Shown: piece after piece, positions 42,683 to 55,426 of the stretch
How the letters are laid out: every line of letters begins with the position of its first letter
Numbering within the stretch: position 1 is the stretch's first letter
NCBI GenBank assembly: GCA_020137815.1
Contig: CM035354.1
Location: 7,688,001-7,752,000, forward strand
Origin: Hormiphora californensis
Taxonomy: Eukaryota; Animalia; Ctenophora
Direction of reading: 5' to 3'
Length of the DNA stretch: 64,000 nucleotides
Position numbers and translations under genes: made by a program
The notes under the pieces: generated by a model
Databases searched by the model: none
The model's input: only the letters and a program-made list of their open reading frames with translations
Told to the model about the DNA's origin: nothing

Positions 42683-45409
42683 ATGACAAAGGTAGGAGCT
42701 GTAGGGGCTCAAGTGGAACGTGGGGAGAGTGATGATGAGATTCGACTGGTATGTAGATATCAACCCCTCCTAGACCCTACCTACAGACCCTACCTCCAGA
42801 CCCTATAATAGCCCTAACTCTAGACCCTACCTCATCTCCCCTTCCTCTGTATAAACTAACCCCCCCCCAGATAAACAACAGATTGTTTGCTGATGGTGAT
42901 ACAAGTATGGAGGTGGAGGATGAACAGAAGATAAATGTAGAATACGATGAAACAACTGCTAGCAAGTTAGTACACCCACTCCCCCCTTGGGGGTTGATCT
43001 CTTGTAGATCAGGTTCGCATCTGGTTTTAATCCTATACATCTACAACTGACACACCACTGATATAACCCCTCCCCTCTTCCATTCCACTTGTACTCTTTT
43101 CACCCTCCTCCCTAATCGACCCCTTGACACCAGCTCCACTTCCTTGCTGAGTTACTCAACAACCACTTCCTGTAGGTTCAGCTGGAGGAAGCTAGCAGTG
43201 TACATGGGGCCTGGGTTCCTCATGTCTATAGCCTACCTGGACCCAGGTAATATAGAGTCGGACCTACAGGCGGGTGTAGTGGCTGGGTACAACCTTCTGT
43301 GGCTCCTGCTTGTAGCACACTGCCTGGGATTTCTCTTACAGTGCTTAGCAATCAGGTAACTACACTTGTACCAAACTAACAAACCTTTCATCAAGTGCAG
43401 AGTATCCTGTCTGGCGCCGCGACCCCATCTGAGCGCACACATTTGAGAATCAAATCGGGGTCTAGTACCGCCTGACAGAGAGTATCTGTTCTATCCTAAC
43501 CCCATTATATTATCTCTCAGGTTGGGAGTGGTTACAGGTAACCACTTGGCTGAAGTGGCACGTGCACAATACCATGTGGTTCCCCGTGTTGTTCTCTGGC
43601 TCATGATCGAGATAGCCATTATTGGATCTGACATGCAGGAGGTTATTGGTAAGTTCACACTCTAAACATTAGTTTAGTTAGACAGCACTTGACTAGACTA
43701 GATTGATTTTTTGATTGATTGAAGAAAGTTAATATTGAACAAAATATAGATATCAATGATGAGATCTTGTTCAGGATTAAATAGGGAGGAAAATTAGAAA
43801 AATATCTGGCGAGGGCCGGGCTCGAACCGACAACCTCTGGGTTTCGCGTCCATTGCTCTACCTATTGAGCTACCCCGTAGTGAAATTAGCAGCCAGAGAA
43901 GATATTAAAAATCTTGTTCCGACAAAATATAGAAAATTGGAAAATAAACACACTATAAAACAGTCCGTAATTTAGTCCGTCCCCGTGCGAGGAAAATCGC
44001 TAGTCACACTCAAAACAAAAGGCACGCAAAACAGTTTCTCGAAAATCCACAGGCTTGTGGGGAAGATAGTTCCGCAGGAATTTGAAGCTGGAGGATGGAT
44101 ATGTGTGTAGGAAAACAGGAACGTTGAAAGGATCTAAAATGGGATAAGCTAGAAGGGAAGTAGGTGCCACCTCATCCCGAGGGGAGCACCGCTCACACCA
44201 GGCCCTCCCCAAGCGAAAGGGCCGTGGTTGTTAGGGTTAGAGCTAGAAGGGAAAGAGATCCCATCCTTCTCAAGGGGAGCACCCAGGGCGAACGAGTTCG
44301 CCCGGCAAGGTCAATTGACTGTAGTTCGATCAGACCGGGCGACCCACTCAAACCAGGCCCTCCCCAAGCGAAAGGGGGTGTTTTTGTTAGATATCAAGCT
44401 ATAAGCATATCTCAATTGTGTTAAGGAAAATTTAATAATCTGTTAATAAAGGTATATAAGCAGTATATATATACTGACCGGGGGGGGGGGGGGGGGGCAG
44501 GTGGAACATGAGCCGGTCTATTATTCGTGTTGGTATGTGTGTGTGTGTCATGTCAGGAGGTATTTTGTGTCATAATAGTTACCTATTACACGTCCTGGTC
44601 CATTATTATAAACCATCACTTCTCCCACGTTCATCACAGTCTGATTCTTCTCCCTGTCATTAGTCAACTCTCTCACGTGATCATACAGAACTACACCATT
44701 AATTGTCTCCGATAGAGGACGATCACAGATTATGGTATAAGTCTGGTCTTGCAGGGAGTCCCCCTTAGGACCCACTGAGTAGATAGTTCCACAGTAGAGG
44801 TATGTACTGTGTGATTTTAAATGACTGAGACTGGTATATTGCAAATTGCGTGAAAACTATGGCATCTTTCGACTTCAAATTTTGGGACATGATAAAACTA
44901 GGTTGTAGCAATTTTCTCCTAGTTTTACAGCAAATTTCAATGTTCCTGAATGAATCTATTGCCCAAAAACCTCATCCAACTTTACACAGCCATATCTCTA
45001 GAGTCTAATGAGATAGAGTGTTCAAATTTTTAGGAGAGACAGATAAGACGATTTCGAATGTTTTGTCTGCTTTACGAGTTGCTACATTTTACCATTTGTT
45101 CACAGGAACTGTTTAAAGTGATGTAACACGCTCTAATTAGGCCAAATTTAGGTCATTTTACCCCTCAAAGATCACATGTCCAGCTGCATCTAGTGGGCTA
45201 ATGAGGCCTTGAACACGCATACGTCACGTGTTACTATAGGGCTACAGCTCTCCTTTTCCATCTTGAACCAGCAGACATGATCATGGTGTCTGGAAGTGGT
45301 AACAAGCTGTAGAAAACCAGACAGACTAGATGCTCTCTACTTCAACGTATCACTCTCTCCCTTTCTCGTTATAAGGTCACGTGACTGGAATTGGGATCTC
45401 GACATGAGA

Positions 45410-45472
<63 letters not shown>

Positions 45473-48400
45473 TGTGTGTGAGAGAGAGAACGCTTTGTAG
45501 ACATTGTGGTCATGTCGAGATCCCAATTCCAGTCACGTGACCTTATAACGAGAAAGAGAGAGAGAGTGATACGTTGAAGTAGAGAGCATCTAGTCTGTCT
45601 GGTTTTTTCTACAGCTTGTTACCACTTCCAGACACCATGATCATGACTGCTGGTTCAAGCTGGAAAAGGAGAGCTGTAGCCCTACTGGCCTACTGCAGTA
45701 ACACGTGACGTATGCGTGTTCAAGGCCTCATTAGCCCACTAGATGCAGCTGGACATGTGATCTTTGAGGGGTAAAATGACCTAAATATAGCCTAATTAGA
45801 GCGTGTTACATCACTTTAAACAGTTCCTGTGAACAAATGGTAAAATGTAGCAACTCGTAAAGCAGACAAAACATTCGAAATCGTCTTATCTGTCTCTCCT
45901 AAAAATTTGAACACTCTATCTCATTAGACTCCAGAGATATGGTTGTGTAAAGTTGGAGGAGGTTTTTGGGCAATATATTCATTCAGGAACATTGAAATTT
46001 GCTGTAAAACTAGGAGAAAATTGCTACAACCTAGTTTTATCATGTCCCAAAATTTGAAGTCGAAAGATGCCATAGTTTTCACGCAATTTGCAATATACCA
46101 GTCTCAGTCATTTAAAATCACACAGTATATCTTAGGGAGGTGCTGGAAGATTCATTGAACTCCCCTGAACCGGGGATTAGTCTGACTTCAGTTCCTAGTA
46201 TACGATCAGTAGCGGATGAAGTTTCGCCTGCATCTTCCAATCTAAACAGAAATTGTGGTAATAGCACTGATCACAGGAAGGCCTTCAAACATCAGAATTA
46301 ATATTAAGAGATAATTAAACTGCTGCTTCTCACCTGTTCACAATTACAACTGCTATATTGTTAAATGGTCTGATGTTTGTAGCAAATATCACGTTTAACC
46401 ATTGTGGATCCCCTCTTCTTGGCTCGGAATGAAAACGTGTATAGTTATCACCATCTATAGCTTTATCTGCTGTTTCTCCGTCTACAGCATTCACACTGCT
46501 TGCACGTGCTGAACTGATATCCACTTGAGTAGTACCAATGAACGCTGGTAGAAGAAGAAGGAGTAGGGCTGAGACTCTCCCTCTCATTATATCAATCAAA
46601 CTACATGCCTATAAGATGTGATTTTAACTCATTGAAGTTTATCGATGTTGGTATCTAACTAAGATAATATTTTCTAAGTTTACCCTACACACTAGGGGGT
46701 GCTATTTGAAATTTGCATCACTGAAATCCATAAGTTAAGACGGATTCTGGTAGAGTAGGCCCTAATTAGCAAGTGTACGAAAGGGGAAGGTCTAGATCTT
46801 TGTAATCTCTGTGTTCAGGGGGATTTTGTAGATAAGAAAAAGTTTAGAACTTATCCCCTAAAAACGACTGTTCCCGATATCTTAGAGCTCTAAAACTTTG
46901 CAGATCGGCTTTATATGATAAAATACAAAGTTGGTAAAAATTTCAGACCTTTAGCTCAAAATTCATTTTCATGACCGGAATGAACTTTGTTCATTCTCTC
47001 AATCAGGAGTCCATTTGACTTCAGAATTTTATTAGAAATGTTTGGCAATCGATTATCTGCAAAATGCGACCAACGAGAGCCAAAACGGACCACCACAAGA
47101 CACGCGGTGATCTGATCTCCAAAGTCGGTCAGGACATTCATAATCCTTGCCAAATATGACCTAGTTTTGCACGGTTGCCGACATCGGATAGGTCTAAAAT
47201 TTAGCACAGTGGCTCTAAACAATGTGTAGATGAGATTAGCAAAGTTTCAGGCTTAAAGCTCAAAATTCATTTTTATGACTGGAATGAACTTCGTTCATTC
47301 TCTCAATCAGGAGGTCATTTGACTCCAGAATTTCAATAAATGTGTTTGGCAATCAATAAACTGCCAAATGGGATCGGATCACATTGGAGAATCTGACCCA
47401 GCACCCGATGGATCAGATCACATTATAGAAATCTGGTCCACCAGCCCATGGATCAGATCACATTATAAGGATCTGGTCCACCACCCATGGATCAGATCAC
47501 ATTTTAGGGATCTGGTCCACCAAACCATGGATCAGATCACATAACAGGGATCTTATCCACCAACCCATGGATCAGATCACATAACAGGTATCTTATCCAA
47601 CACCCCATGGATCAGATCAAATTAAAGGGATCTGATCTACCACCCATGGATCAGATCACATTATAGATATCTGATCCACCACCCCATGGATCAGATCATA
47701 TTATAGGGATCTGGTCCACCAACCCATGGATCAGATCACATAACAGGGATCTTATCCATCACCCCATGGATCAGATCACATTTTAGGGATCTGGTCCGCC
47801 AACCCATGGATCAGATCACATTATAAGGATCTGGTCCACCACCCATGGATCAGATCACATTTTAGGGATCTGGTCCGCCAACCCATGGATCAGATCACAT
47901 TATAAGGATCTAGTCCGCCAACCCATGGATCAGATCACATTATAAGGATCTAGTCCACCACCCATGGATCAGATCACATTTTAGGGATCTTATCCACCAA
48001 CCCATGGATCAGATATCATGTTAGGGATCTGGTCCACCACCCATGGATCAGATCACATTACAGGGATATGATCCACGAACTCATGGATCAGATCTCATTT
48101 TAGGGATCTGATCTACCACCCATGGATCAGATCACATTATAGATGGGTTGGTGGACCAGATCCCTAAAATGTGATCTGATCCATGGGGTGATGGATAAGA
48201 TCCCTGTTATGTGATCTAATACATGAGTTAGTGGACCAGATCCCTATAATATGATCTGATCCATGGGGTGGTGGATCAGATATATAATGTGATCTGATCC
48301 ATGGGTGGTAGATCAGATCCCTAAAATGAGATCTGATCCATGGGGTGGTGGATCAGCTCTCTTTAATTTGATCTGATCCATGGGGTGATGTTATGTGATC

Positions 48401-51400
48401 TGTTATGTGATCTGATCCATGGGTTGGCGGATCAGATCCCTATAATGTGATCTGATCCATGGGTGGTGGACCAGATCCTTATAATGTGATCTGATCCATG
48501 GGTTGGCGGACCAGATCCCTAAAATGTGATCTGATCCATGGGGTGATGGATAAGATCCCTATTATGTGATCTGATCCATGGGTTGGTGGACCAGATCCCT
48601 AAAATGTGATCTGATCCATGGGGTAGTGGATCAGATCCCTATAATGTGATCTGATCCATGGGTGGTGGACCAGATCCTTATAATGTGATCTGATCCATGG
48701 GTTGGCGGACTAGATCCCTAAAATGTGATCTGATCCATGGGGTGATGGATAAGATCCCTATTATGTGATCTGATCCATGGGTGGTAGATCAGATCCCTAA
48801 AATGAAATCTGATCCATGGGGTGGTGGATCAGCTCCCTTTAATTTGATCTGATCCATGGGGTGATGGATAAGATATCTATAATGTGATCTGATCCATGGG
48901 TGGTGGACCAGATCCTTATAATGTGATCTGATCCATCGGGTGCCGGGTCAGATTCTCCAATGTGATCCGATCCCATTTGGCAGTTTATTGATTGCCAAAC
49001 ACATTTATTGAAATTCTGAAGTCAAATGACCTTCCTGATTGAGAGAATTAACAAAGTTCATTCCAGTCATAAAAATGAATTTTGAGCTTTAAGCCTGAAA
49101 CTTTGCTAATCTCATCTACCAGATCCCTAAAATGTGATCTGATCCATGGGTGGTGGACCAGATCCTTATAATGTGATCTGATCCATGGGTTGGCGGACCA
49201 GATCCCTAAAATGTGATCTGATCCATGGGGTGATGGATAAGATCCCTGTTATGTGATCTGATCCATGGGTTGGTGGACCAGATCCCTATAATATGATCTG
49301 ATCCATGGGGTGGTGGATCAGATATCTATAATGTGATCTGATCCATGGGTGGTAGATCAGATCCCTTTAATTTGATCTGATCCATGGGGTGTTGGATAAG
49401 ATACCTGTTATGTGATCTGATCCATGGGTTGGTGGATAAGATCCCTGTTATGTGATCTGATCCATGGGTGGTGAATCAAATCCCTAAAATGTGATCTGAT
49501 CCATGGGTGGTGGACCAGATCCTTATAATGTGATCTGATCCATGGGCTGGTGGACCAGATTTCTATAATGTGATCTGATCCATCGGGTGCTGGGTCAGAT
49601 TCTCGAATGTGAATCAATCCCATTTGGCAGTTTATTGATTGCCAAACACATTTATTGAAATTCTGGAGTCAAATGACCTCCTGATTGAGAGAATGAACGA
49701 AGTTCATTCCAGTCATAAAAATGAATTTTGAGCTTTAAGCCTGAAACTTTGCTAATCTCATCTACACATTGTTTAGAGCCACTGTGCTAAATTTTAGACC
49801 TATCCGATGTCGGCAACCGTGCAAAACTAGGTCATATTTGGCAAGGATTATGAATGTCCTGACCGACTTTGGAGATCAGATCACCGCGTGTCTTGTGGTG
49901 GTCCGTTTTGGCTCTCGTTGGTCGCATTTTGCAGATAATCGATTGCCAAACATTTCTAATAAAATTCTGAAGTCAAATGGACTCCTGATTGAGAGAATGA
50001 ACAAAGTTCATTCCGGTCATGAAAATGAATTTTGAGCTAAAGGTCTGAAATTTTTACCAACTTTGTATTTTATCATATAAAGCCGATCTGCAAAGTTTTA
50101 GAGCTCTAAGATATCGGGAACAGTCGTTTTTAGGGGATAAGTTCTAAACTTTTTCTTATCTACAAAAACCCCCTGAACACAGAGATCACAAAGGTCTAGA
50201 CCTTCCCCTTTCGTACACTTGCTAATTAGGGCCTACTCTACCAGAATCCGTCTTAACTTTTGGGATATCTGCAAAAAAATTTCCCCCAAATAGCACCCCC
50301 TGTGTACACACACTTGTATTACTCATTTGACAGGGATCTAACACTAAGAGTCGTACTAAGCACAAGCAGAGTTCACATTGTATGCTCCTGCTTCTCTGTG
50401 TACTCCACATACCACTCAGGGAAACAGAGCAGCAGCCCTGGGCGATGTGTCCCTTTCTTTCCGCTCACTACCTATCTCTCTCTGATTAGAGATACCATCG
50501 TGGCCTGGTATAGCACCAGCTCCCCAACCAGTGCATTGGGCCAAAGCAGCTAGGCAATATACCGACCATTTTTCTTACCCGCCCGAGGCTAACGCCGAGG
50601 ATCCGCCCAGCAATGGGATGATGCCCTGCAAAGGGATGGTGCCCAGAAATGGGATGATGCCCTGCGAAGGAATGATGCCCAGCAATGGGATGCTGCCCAG
50701 AAATGGGACGATATCTGACAAATTACTTTACTTTATAAAAGCGCCAGATAATATTCTCTCACTCTCTCTCTAATTCAGTACTCTCTATCTCCCCGCAAAT
50801 CCGTGCTCCATATAATATCCCCTATTCTCTCACTCTCTCTCTAATTCAGTACTCTCTATCTCCCCGCAAATCCGTGCTCCATATAATATCCCCTATTCTC
50901 TCATTCTCTCTCTAATTCAGTGCTCTCTAACTCCCTGCTTATCTCCTTCTTTAAACAGTTGGAAACATAAAAAACCCGCCACCCCGCCCCGCCGCCCCAC
51001 CCCGCCCACCCTAACTTTAATATTAGAGGGATTCATAATGATTGACACTTGGCTATTATCCCCCGAATTACGAGTCAGGACCAAATAAAACATGCTCTAC
51101 CATTTAGTATGGAAATTTTGCGATCGGAAAACAGTTTTTATATGTATTCCAGTTGAAGATATATTGCCACCTTGACACCAGAAATAGCTTAGTGTTGTTA
51201 CTCGCAGACACCCAAAATTCATATGAAACAAGGACGGAACAGCACATGATAACAGACACACAAACATACAACAGAATAACAAAGCAAACGAAGGACCTTA
51301 TGAAAACTCGACAAAGTACCAGAACAGCCACTCACATAATAACCCAGCATGGAGAAAACAACCACCATCTAGGCAAAATAGGAAAAACACAAAACGGCTT

Positions 51401-54400
51401 ATGCACATTATGCCAACAGGAGGAAGAAACGGTAGAACATATTATTTGCAAGTGTCCAGCGATAGCACAAAAAAGGGAAGAGCTCTCAGGAAGTGCGTAC
51501 CTTAGTGATATATATTCAACACTGAGAAACAACCCACTAAAAGAAGCAATCGACATAATGCTGTTGTTCCTGAAACGAAAGAAATTAATCATAAACGACA
51601 CAGCAGACTAGAGATCCAAACTACCAACACAACCAGAACACACAAATTAAACAACAATCAAACAAAAATTAACAAACAAATACCTAGAAACCAGTACAAC
51701 AAAAATCAAAAGGAAGGACTGCAATGTGTACAACGACATAGAAGCACGCAATGCAGCGCATCTCAAAGACGACTGCTGCAACCCCCCTCACCTCCCCCGC
51801 AGCAGTCGACTTTCCCCACCAGGGATATGCCCCCCCATAACCCTTCCCATTTCTAGTCGGCCCCACAAATGGGAACTCCCCCCCCCCCCCATACCTTACG
51901 GCCATCATTAGCGGTGCTGGTATCACTAAGTGATTGGCCCTGTGCGTAGGGTCCCCAACAGGGGTTCACGCCCATGGCAACCGCTCCTATCAAATCAAAA
52001 AAATAAGCACAAGCACAGTAAATAAAAGGAGGAAGGCAGCCTTTAGTAATGAGGAAAAGGATGGAGTTTATATAGCTCTCGCATTCCCTTCTATAGAGAA
52101 TTCATCCCTCTCTGTCTTGATAATGGGGGGGATTGTGATCATTGAAAAGAACCATTGGGTTAGAGCATCCATTGTGTTCTTATAATATTAATAGAGATGA
52201 TAGAGAGGAACACAATAGATTTTACACTGACAGAGAAGCAAGCAGGAGATCATGTCCCTGAATCTAAGCTAAGCGATGTGTCTATCTCTCAACACCTGTC
52301 TATTATAGTGAGCTATCCACAAGCATTCAGATTCAATAGGGTACTAAGAAAACTTAGTATACCAAGAATTGAAGACCGGGACCCGGTTAAGTTGGCCCTT
52401 ATAAATGAACTAAAAACCCCATCAAGTAGGCCCCGTCAACTATAAACCCCCACCCCGTTTAATATTTATAAAGGTGGGGGGGGGGTGCAACCCAAAAAAA
52501 AACCAACCGTACCCTGGATTTTCAAAATTTTGATTTTTTGATTTTTTATCTTTTTTGATTTTTTTTATCTTTTTTGATTTTTTTTTTATTTTTTTAAATT
52601 TTTTTGGGGAGTTTCAAGACCCCAAAAGGGGTCCTGGTTGTTGTGTGGATGCTGGCCTGGTGCTGGGGATCAATGTGTATTTGGTTGTTCAAACTGTTAT
52701 TGGACTGGAGTTATCCGCTGCAGTTATTGGACTTGTTGTAGTGTTTTATTGTATGTATAGTTTGGTGGTGGTATATTTCTTATTGCTAGCTATCGGGGTT
52801 AGGATTCCATTTGATTTTTTTAAATTTTTTTTATCGTTTTTTATTTTTTTATCGTTTTTGATTTTATTTGATCGTTTTTGATCTTTTTTGAACTTTTTTG
52901 TTCAACATTAAACATTTAAAAAAAAATCGAAAACGATCAAAAAAGTTCAAAAAAAATCAAAAACGATCAAAAAAATCAAAAACGATAAAAAAATCAAAAA
53001 CGACCAAAAAAATCAAAAACGACCAAAAAAAAATCAAAAACGACCAAAAAAATCAAAGAAATTTCAATCAAAAACGACCAAAAAAACCAACCATACCCTG
53101 GGTTTCGGAAAAAGTTTGATTTTTTTTGGGGTTGCACCCCCCCCCCCAAGGTGAAATACAACTAATTCTCACTTCTATCCCCAGGCACGGCTATAGCCCT
53201 GTATATCCTCTCTAACAAGGCTATACCGCTATGGGGAGGCGTCCTAGTCACCGTTATAGACACCTTCACTTTCCTATTCCTTGACAAGTACGGACTCCGA
53301 AAGCTGGAGGCCTTCTTTGCCTTTCTCATTGCTGTGATGGCCGCTATGTTTGGATATGAGTACTTTAATCACCTGCCAGACCAGGTACACTATCTATTAG
53401 ATCAAGTGCTATGACGTGTCTATTTCTGTGTGTTTCACTGCTTTACAGCCCCCCCCCACTGCACCACACACCGCCCCAATATCCACACATCTGCAGGTGG
53501 AAGTGCTGAAGGGGTTTATACCAGGGTTCGGGGATGGCAAATGGACACCTGATGTGACGGTCCAAGCTGTGGGCATGATAGGGGCTGTTATCATGCCTCA
53601 TAACTTCTACCTTCACTCTGCACTGGTCCGCTCAAGAGAGGTACGTATCTCCCAAACCTACCCGGACCCCTATTTGTTACACAAGCCATACAGCAGAGAC
53701 CTCGGCCAGATTCGTCTCGATTAGGCACATTATATTGCGTCACAATATTAGCAGATTGATCTTACTTTTGTGAAAGCTGAACTTTTCACCCAAGGACCTT
53801 AGTTAAGAAATCTGACGTGGCGTTTCTTTCTCGTAGCTCATGGCTCTTCTCTCTAGCAGTAAATCTCCTTGTCTATAATTGTTTTCCTCCTCTCCTCCCT
53901 GCTCTCTTTTCCCCGCCTCCGCCACAGTCCACGGTGGTGGTTAGAGGAGGGGTGGGTGTTCGAGGCGTACCCTCCAGCTAACAGCTAGATCATTGCTCTC
54001 AGATACATCACCACGTACAATAAAAAATATCAATTTATAGCGCACCCGCCGGGTGTACCTCAAGTAAGGGCTTTTATAGATGATATTATAGAGACTAACA
54101 GTAACAACTAAAAACGCGTGTTTGCAGGTAAACAGGAGCAGTAAAGGGGCAGTGAAGGAAGCAACATTCTACAACTCTATTGAGTCAGGGCTGGCCCTTA
54201 TTTGCTCCTTTGTTATCAATCTGTTCGTAGTGTGTGTATTTGCCAACTCATTCTACTTTGATCATGATACCCAGCAACGATGTTCAAGTTAGTACGGGCG
54301 TTAGTACAATATACATTGTACATATACCCTGAATATTTAGTACACACTGACAATTTCAACTTTCCTCTCTCATCATCCTTTCAAAGCTATTGTGTCCCTA

Positions 54401-55426
54401 CATTCCACCCTCTTCCATATAACCTCCACTCCTTTAGATGAGACATCTCTGGATCTGTACTCTGCTGGAGAGTATCTGGGGTGTGCATTTGGTGGTCCTT
54501 CCAAGTACATCTGGGCGGTGGGGATCTTGGCAGCCGGCCAGAGTTCAACTATGACAGGAACATACTCTGGTAAGTACAGGGTGGTTACTAAAAAGTCACC
54601 AGGACTCATGCTAAAAACAAAATTCGACTGCTAGTAGTCCCACTACTCTAATAAGCCCAATGGAAGGGAAAGGGAAAAGAAATGCTAGAAGAGGGGGATG
54701 GGGAAGTACAATTATTATACGAGTTTCCCAGAAACCTGATGACGACACACCTATGTCCTATATAATCTGTACGAGCTGTCTAGTGGTACCGACCCCATTT
54801 TGATTCTCAGATCGGGTTGGCGCCGCCAGACAGTGTACAAGTACAGCCTTCACAGCTACTAACACCTCTCTCTCTCTTTCTCAGGCCAGTTTGTTATGGA
54901 GGGGTTTGTTAAGATTCACCTTCCAAGGTGGCAGAGAGTCCTGATAACTCGATCTATAGCCATCCTTCCTACTGTGATCCTGGCTGCGTTCTCTTCAAAC
55001 AACATGACCAAGCTGAGCCACATGAACGACATTCTGAATATCCTGCAAAGTATAATGCTACCCTTCGCTCTCCTCCCTATCATACAGTTCACTAATGATA
55101 AGAAGATCATGGGGAGTTTCAAGACCCCAAAAGGGGTTCTAGTTGTTGTGTGGATGCTGGCCTTCCTGGTGCTGGGGATCAATGTGTATTTGGTTGTTCA
55201 AACAGTTATTGGACTGGAGTTATCCGCTGCAGTTATTGGACTTGTTGTAGTGTTTTATTGTATGTATAGTTTGGTAGTGGTATATTTCTTATTGCTAGCT
55301 ATCGGGGTTAGGATTCCATTTTTTCAGCGGTATTTCCCAGACCCAGTCCATTCAACTAGGGCCGGAACTCCTGACGAGAGGACGGCTCTTGTTGCAGGCA
55401 CGTCTGGGACTGTAAATCCAAAATAA
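42683..55426 (+). CDS. SLC11A2: NRAMP/DMT1 (SLC11) divalent metal transporter, multi-exon, with a ~9.5-kb intron (43629-53185)
   Basis: [33 protein letters not shown]; [14 protein letters not shown]; [13 protein letters not shown]; [28 protein letters not shown]; [14 protein letters not shown]11A1 vs A2 orthology cannot be resolved. Confidence 0.95.
43407..43478. mobile_element. Short palindromic MITE family (CTGTCTGGCGG...CCGCCAGACAG), several copies
   Basis: Related copies at 54776-54833, ~56022-56092, ~56292-56412 and 58755-58805. Confidence 0.7.
43807..43880 (-). ncRNA. tRNA-like sequence (tRNA-derived SINE head or tRNA pseudogene)
   Basis: Minus strand ggggTAGCTCAATAGGtagagc...GGTTCGAGCCcgg..cgcca has A and B boxes followed by TTTTT, but the acceptor and anticodon stems are mismatched and position 33 is G. 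Confidence 0.65.
44548..46587 (-). CDS. Nested antisense gene: secreted F5/8-type C / fucolectin(FTP)-like galactose-binding-domain protein, exon 2 interrupted by a foldback element
   Basis: Exon 46587-46334: signal peptide + [20 protein letters not shown]...PQWL.V...VVIVNR. Exon from ~46241: [22 protein letters not shown]|[27 protein letters not shown]. Confidence 0.75.
44807..46125. mobile_element. 1.3-kb foldback element with TA TSD and (GA)n loop
   Basis: Arms 44807-45406 and 45510-46125 are near-perfect reverse complements; TA at 44805-06 and 46126-27. Confidence 0.93.
46688..50304. mobile_element. 3.6-kb foldback (FB/Galileo-like architecture) element with internal ~40-bp tandem arrays
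   Basis: Termini TA-cac(act)agggggtgctatttg / caaatagcaccccctgtg-TA; ~650-bp inverted arms 46733-47395 / 49605-50259; ~40-bp arrays inverted about ~48142; partial arm duplicate 48940-49119. Confidence 0.9.
50752..50935. repeat. ~71-bp tandem repeat x2.5
   Basis: 'attctctcactctctctctaattcagtactctctatctccccgcaaatccgtgctccatataatatcccct' repeated. Confidence 0.85.
51153..52003 (+). mobile_element. 5'-truncated non-LTR retrotransposon (C-terminal zinc knuckle of ORF2 plus 3' UTR)
   Basis: [40 protein letters not shown] is the CCHC motif ending LINE ORF2; A-rich 'tcaaa' tail; second tail copy at 37592-37655. Confidence 0.8.
52476..53147. mobile_element. G-run-terminated TIR element containing a copy of part of the NRAMP last exon
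   Basis: TIR G(n)tgcaaccc(c)aaaaaaa / tttttttggggttgcaC(n), flanked by 'aaggt' on both sides; 52606-52811 is nearly identical to 55111-55321. Confidence 0.65.

Follow-up and report, generated by a model that had tools for sequence, protein, structure and literature searches.

What becomes of a coding exon when a transposon that is almost entirely one inverted repeat inserts into it? This question is raised by a locus of the ctenophore Hormiphora californensis, analysed here in a window of 64,000 nucleotides (the whole stretch from position 7,688,001 to 7,752,000 of contig CM035354.1, assembly GCA_020137815.1; all coordinates below count from its first letter unless another contig is named). 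In this window, exon 2 of a lectin-like gene on the minus strand, which spans 46241..44548, is split at a TA by a 1.3-kb foldback element. A preliminary description of the same DNA, made from the letters alone, had interpreted the element as an orientation-independent, introner-like generator of introns, with a simple knockout allele as the alternative. The latter stays the default reading: the locus probably represents a recent, still-segregating insertion allele of a non-autonomous, TA-targeting foldback transposon in a redundant lectin-like gene. The existence of both filled and empty alleles, the properties of the transposon family in the genome, and the large number of paralogues of the interrupted gene are the principal observations that point in this direction.

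The insertion and its filled and empty alleles

As identified by sequence reading and a repeat finder, positions 44807-46125 comprise a near-perfect palindrome of 1319 bp that is flanked by TA on each side. The outer arms (44802-45235 and 45697-46130 in the output of the repeat finder) are 434 nt long and 98% complementary, and inner arm segments extend as far as the loop, a (GA)n/(GT)n tract of 102 nt at 45408-45509; terminal inverted repeats are thus present, with arms that are complementary (98%) over the whole length of the element. The element starts with CTGTGTGATTTTAAATG and ends with the reverse complement of CTGTGTGATTTTAAATG. When the RNA of the gene strand is folded, the element forms one hairpin (-1104 kcal/mol) in which pairing begins at the flanking TA. 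The foldback, its TA duplication and its location inside exon 2, all of which had been proposed in the preliminary description, are borne out by the sequence, the repeat finder and the fold.

The filled state is found in sequencing runs X1 and X2, which come from one sample. Unbranched contigs of these runs lead from the flanks into the element (44480-44829, 44326-44829, 46102-46233 and 46122-46718), the depth of the junction contigs equals that of the flanks, and there are no alternative letters in about 1.2 kb of flanking sequence. Because the flanks lack heterozygous letters, the insertion appears to be homozygous or hemizygous in this sample. An assembly artefact was considered and rejected, since both junctions are spanned by independent short-read contigs from X1 and X2.

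The empty state, which the preliminary description had named as something to look for, is present in run X7, from another sample and another study. Here, a contig passes directly from 44803 to 46125 and leaves out 1321 letters (3 ambiguous), exactly the element plus one TA; the depth at the joint is 97.8, compared with about 135-150 in the flanks. This joint is not a product of RNA splicing: on the gene strand, GT-AG borders arise at none of the 4 equivalent cut positions, and X7 covers intron 1 of the gene and the non-genic flanks at the same depth as the exons. It is therefore an empty-site allele in DNA. The same run yields no contig over 44542-44755, and such holes prove nothing. Taken together, the filled site in X1 and X2 and the empty site in X7 imply that the insertion is still segregating and that the uninterrupted gene is the ancestral state. 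A separate contig of X7, of low depth (2.07), links 44094 to 46330 with 2235 letters skipped; it may be chimeric, or it may reflect a rare deletion allele in which most of the lectin-like gene is lost.

The transposon family

The family to which the element belongs was searched for in the genome that contains the window (110.7 Mb in 45 contigs). With one arm as the query, at least 40 scored matches, among 201 candidates, show 98-100% identity; over the outer 429 nt, copies are 98-99% identical to one another. A 28-nt pattern of the terminus matches the genome 94 times in forward and 88 times in reverse orientation; because these 182 matches compare with 0 for the reversed control, the family is not a product of chance, and the number of termini corresponds to about 90 copies. 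The near-identity of the arms between copies suggests that the family is young. A sample of 34 distinct copies with their flanks, about a third of the family, was compared. TA..TA surrounds 33 of these 34 copies, without any longer duplication, in a target context that is A/T-rich from -5 to +5. The length of the copies ranges from 1162 to 1766 bp, with most of the variation in the central microsatellite, and two subfamilies can be distinguished that show about 95% and about 85% identity, respectively, to the copy in the window over longer spans.

No transposase was found in any of the family copies. Candidate autonomous copies, in which 2.9-6.8 kb separate the termini (L031-L033), proved to be ordinary copies with nested retroelements. 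One of these (L031:2106-5762; G000:C5) contains an intact open reading frame (ORF) of 1218 amino acids with reverse-transcriptase motifs of the type without long terminal repeats (non-LTR), nested inside the foldback copy; L045 is the reverse case, a foldback copy that sits within the reverse-transcriptase ORF of a retroelement. A profile search of the contigs produced no match to PF13358 (Tc1-type DDE_3) or PF01359 (mariner). PF03184 (pogo-like DDE_1) is found at seven loci of the genome, including G000:C11:3907833-3908363, with open frames of up to 757 amino acids. These loci, the sole TA-targeting transposase type detected, are candidate mobilisers of the foldback family. Judging by the target duplication, the element is most likely a non-autonomous, TA-targeting cut-and-paste transposon of the Tc1/mariner-pogo type.

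The element shares inverted repeats, a TA duplication and the lack of coding capacity with palindromic or foldback DNA transposons that resemble miniature inverted-repeat transposable elements (MITEs); both also occur as numerous copies of nearly the same sequence and show empty sites that are polymorphic. In contrast to these transposons, the arms of the element in the window fill nearly all of its 1.3 kb, with a microsatellite as the loop, and no autonomous partner with common ends was found for the family, for which the pogo-like DDE_1 loci are candidates only.

The interrupted gene and its surroundings

The host gene appears to be a member of a family of F5/8-type-C (discoidin) lectin-like proteins of the secreted type. 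The pieces of the gene were searched separately, exon by exon, and joined forms were used for frame reading only. The exon 1 piece alone is below the cut-off of Pfam PF00754 (E 0.0028); the distant full-length homologue P0009 passes both curated Pfam cut-offs (PF00754 and PF22633), and P0014, another such homologue, is slightly under them (27.6 vs 28.2 bits and 25.4 vs 27.8 bits, respectively). Both of these proteins and the closer homologues P0001 and P0002 (59-61% identity) align across the insertion site, which falls in a variable-length loop directly ahead of a conserved CGTI motif. The piece of exon 2 downstream of the insertion has at least 54 matches in the same genome, at 36-52% identity, and the gene is therefore part of a large paralogous family. 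Searches of a representative protein library and of 5.8 billion proteins recovered no product of this gene but only the homologues at 59-61% identity, which resemble genomic ORF calls rather than transcript-derived proteins. Of the words sampled from the 3' region of the gene, about 9% occur in runs X5 and X6, labelled as viral metagenome, and these matches may be comb-jelly DNA within a marine sample.

Plus-strand exons of an NRAMP-type gene lie on both sides of the lectin-like gene, at 43.1-43.7 kb and 53.4-55.4 kb; the latter gene is therefore nested in an intron of the former, in agreement with the preliminary description, which had placed it inside another gene. The coordinates of the gene and of the element are collected in Table 1. 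A second, larger foldback (46728-50263) is located about 130 bp upstream of the start of the lectin-like gene. Its outer arms are 795 nt long and 99% complementary, it contains internal arrays of a tandem unit of about 40 nt, and two identical ORFs of 88 amino acids, 46956-47222(-) and 49769-50035(+), belong to it. The summed contig depth at 43900-44434 and 46682-47100 is in the thousands in all DNA runs, so that multi-copy repeats bracket the lectin-like gene within the NRAMP intron.

Table 1. Features of the interrupted lectin-like gene, the foldback element and the surrounding gene (window coordinates; a slash marks an exon-intron border)
Feature	Position	Strand	Evidence
NRAMP-type host gene, upstream exons, DPGN motif	43144..43665	+	ORFs; later exons ~53401-55423
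Lectin-like gene, exon 1	46334..46599	-	ORF; first ATG 46587; hydrophobic signal-like N-terminus; start of F5/8 type C domain
Lectin-like gene, intron 1, 92 nt, CAG/GTGAGA ... TTTCTGTTTAG/	46242..46333	-	Frame continuity VIVNR-LEDAGE
Exon 2, part upstream of the insertion	46128..46241	-	ORF; alignment with homologues P0001 and P0002
TA target-site duplication, right copy	46126..46127		Sequence; single TA kept in the empty allele
Candidate 5' splice site, CTGT/GTGATT	46116..46125	-	First intron base 46121; 5/9 consensus positions
Premature TGA in the terminal repeat	46118..46120	-	ORF 46118..46267; frame reads ..SLRYTV, then stop
Non-autonomous foldback (palindromic) DNA transposon, 1319 bp	44807..46125		Repeats, fold, ~90 genome copies
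Palindrome, right arm	45510..46125		Repeat finder; fold
Central loop, (GA)n/(GT)n microsatellite	45408..45509		Sequence, repeat finder, fold, copy comparison
Palindrome, left arm	44807..45407		Inverted-repeat pairs I1-I4; fold
Candidate 3' splice site, ..AATCACACAG/TA	44807..44828	-	Last intron base 44807; 10/19 pyrimidines
TA target-site duplication, left copy	44805..44806		Sequence; TA..TA around 33/34 sampled family copies
Exon 2, part downstream of the insertion, stop at 44548-44550	44548..44804	-	ORF; homologues at 59-61% identity

Possible fates of the interrupted message

Under the default interpretation, the foldback, MITE-like although 1.3 kb in size, would have inserted by cut-and-paste at a TA in exon 2 of one lectin-like gene. 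In the unprocessed mRNA, a stop is encountered two codons into the element, and the conserved C-terminal 85 residues are lost. Unless the message is rescued at the RNA level, the protein would be truncated ahead of the conserved C-terminal half of the domain, making the allele effectively null; such a null would be tolerated, apparently even in the homozygous state, because the gene has dozens of paralogues. Removal of the element together with one TA restores the open frame, as shown by frame reading in a script. The preliminary description had derived this from the filled sequence, and the X7 contig now provides a real allele of this form.

The interrupted lectin mRNA might instead be repaired in vivo, with the paired arms of about 600 bp triggering excision through an SOS-type ligase pathway or through cryptic splice sites at the ends of the repeats; this appears doubtful, although it deserves to be taken seriously. 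If removal at the RNA level does occur, it is more likely to be of the SOS type than to involve the GT..AG pair at the ends of the element. The search of sequencing runs with the gene region listed no RNA run, and X9, a presumed RNA run, gave no contig there; accordingly, neither RNA evidence of SOS-type excision nor transcripts spliced at the GT..AG pair were seen in this analysis.

SOS splicing removes exonic DNA transposons (Tc1, Tc3, Tc4 and HSMAR2) from 90-100% of the host mRNAs in Caenorhabditis elegans and human cells; it is apparently independent of the spliceosome, with the pairing of inverted repeats being both necessary and sufficient, and its known factors are AKAP17A, CAAP1, RTCB and SUT-2 (PMC12779559). 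The cuts are made near the repeat ends, rarely at GU-AG, and the host gene is rescued only if the scar is in-frame and tolerated (PMC12779559); removal of Tc1 from C. elegans pre-mRNAs had been reported earlier, as cited in the same paper. This process appears to be a closer precedent for the element in the window than introners are. In both cases, a cut-and-paste transposon that targets TA is located in an exon, has repeats able to pair and introduces a premature stop. The element is a DNA transposon in an exon, its inverted repeats are able to pair in the fold, and, with a duplex of about 600 bp that takes up its whole length, it would be an ideal substrate. Structure-triggered excision of this kind, in which pairing of the arms is followed by cleavage of the RNA close to the ends of the repeats and by its religation through an RtcB-type ligase, would yield a mixture of junctions. 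As some of these would be in frame, the allele would be a hypomorph rather than a null. RtcB is present in the genome as a multi-exon gene, and the X1/X2 sample apparently carries the filled allele only, both of which are compatible with such excision. However, among the factors only RtcB was detected: six-frame, exon-by-exon searches found no genome match to the CAAP1 domain, a result that is inconclusive as to absence given how short this domain is, and only a match with E 0.048, equally inconclusive as to absence, to the RNA-binding domain of AKAP17A. Moreover, SOS splicing has been demonstrated in two bilaterians only, whereas the present case concerns a non-bilaterian and is read from DNA, and a very long perfect duplex may be edited or diced instead. 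On balance, excision of the SOS type is considered improbable, though far from negligible.

Removal by the spliceosome is less credible. In this scheme, the CTGT/GTGATT donor and the ..CACAG/TA acceptor would be used, and the element would become a new intron of 1315 nt that leaves 6 nt (Val-Thr) in frame. The arithmetic of GT(46121)..AG(44807) given in the preliminary description is correct: the product is 6 nt longer, in frame and stop-free, reading ..RYTVTYLYCG.... Furthermore, 46121 is the sole donor upstream of the premature TGA, and the scar would fall in the variable-length loop. This donor is also in frame with two more acceptors, which lie 18 and 24 nt into the element, and joining the exon 1 donor to the acceptor at the element end would, by inspection, keep the frame and delete 38 domain residues. 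Transposon-derived introns have precedents in the Micromonas introners and the MITE-derived introns of Fritillaria, as far as these are covered in PMC11282704. Against this stands the quality of the sites. The donor matches 5/9 positions of the general metazoan consensus, which is not species-trained, compared with 8/9 for the gene's own intron, and lacks both the +5G and the exonic AG; the acceptor tract, which had already been described as weak, contains 10/19 pyrimidines compared with 13/19. In addition, the candidate donor and acceptor are complementary and base-paired together at the base of the hairpin in the fold, so that both are sequestered in one duplex. Sequestration of splice sites in a duplex is as likely to hinder splicing as to help it. 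Finally, an intron of 1.3 kb would far exceed the gene's own intron of 92 nt. The use of this pair of sites is thus quite unlikely.

Least credible is a dedicated introner, that is, a transposon family selected to create introns, with many of its copies being introns in genes: only the splice-like ends and the exonic copy in the lectin-like gene speak for it, and we regard it as very improbable. As a proxy, the empty site was rebuilt for each of the 34 sampled copies and the longest ORF across it was recorded, no annotation being used. The median length of these ORFs is 67.5 codons, compared with 75 for a control set of 6060 TA sites from these flanks, so there is no excess of open frames across the sites. 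The six longest site-spanning ORFs include the lectin exon, one reverse-transcriptase ORF of a retroelement and three frames that look low-complexity or non-coding. The preliminary description had suggested that other copies be examined for exonic insertions that coincide with introns; the copy in the lectin exon is the only one of the 34 found in a host coding ORF, and this count, together with the weak, paired sites, fails to support the introner-like interpretation. Nothing in these observations points to a family that seeks exons or forms introns, and the insertion is polymorphic rather than fixed. The splice-site-like ends of the element are probably just its terminal inverted repeats, and a specialised role in generating introns is unlikely.

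The comparison with known cases leads in the same direction. Among the groups named in PMC9860276, PMC12130899 and PMC11282704, introners are known from Micromonas, Aureococcus, dinoflagellates and fungi, and the families are defined there by many copies that serve as spliced introns in genes; the main texts of the first two surveys do not name ctenophores, and a literature search for introners in this group turned up a single, unrelated paper. The non-canonical, MITE-derived introns of Fritillaria borealis and the nonconventional introns of euglenids are, as presented in PMC11282704, fixed and abundant, and their excision has been demonstrated. Like introners, the element is short and non-autonomous, a DNA transposon that has inverted repeats and a target duplication and whose end, together with the duplication, could supply splice sites; with the introns of Fritillaria and euglenids, so far as described there, it shares a derivation of the insert from a transposon and paired ends that bring the exon borders together. 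In contrast to all of these, the window contains a single young allele known from DNA alone, with weak sites and, among 34 copies, one that is exonic and polymorphic.

Several points weigh against the view that the locus is simply a recent insertion allele in a redundant gene. In the sequenced sample, apparently only the interrupted allele is present, and a rescued gene would fit this observation too. The insertion is located in a variable-length loop before the CGTI motif, a position at which a short scar might be tolerated if in frame, and efficient removal of the element from the mRNA is compatible with the data, all of which are genomic. The superfamily is assigned from the TA duplication alone because no transposase with matching ends was found. 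Lastly, the ORF-based test of exonic location is crude, the control median itself being 75 codons, and covers 34 of the approximately 90 copies. A segregating insertion allele of a non-autonomous foldback nevertheless remains the probable explanation.

As it stands, the locus is a routine case of a young transposon allele within a family of redundant genes. It is of value as a natural experiment: filled and empty alleles of one exon occur in nature, the inserted DNA is an inverted repeat of an extreme kind, and three outcomes, namely no rescue, spliceosomal intronisation and SOS-type structure-triggered excision, could therefore be distinguished in an early-branching animal. Repair of the mRNA, if true, would extend the excision of transposons at the RNA level to ctenophores, and such a rescue would bear on the origin of new introns and on the age of RNA-level defence against DNA transposons.

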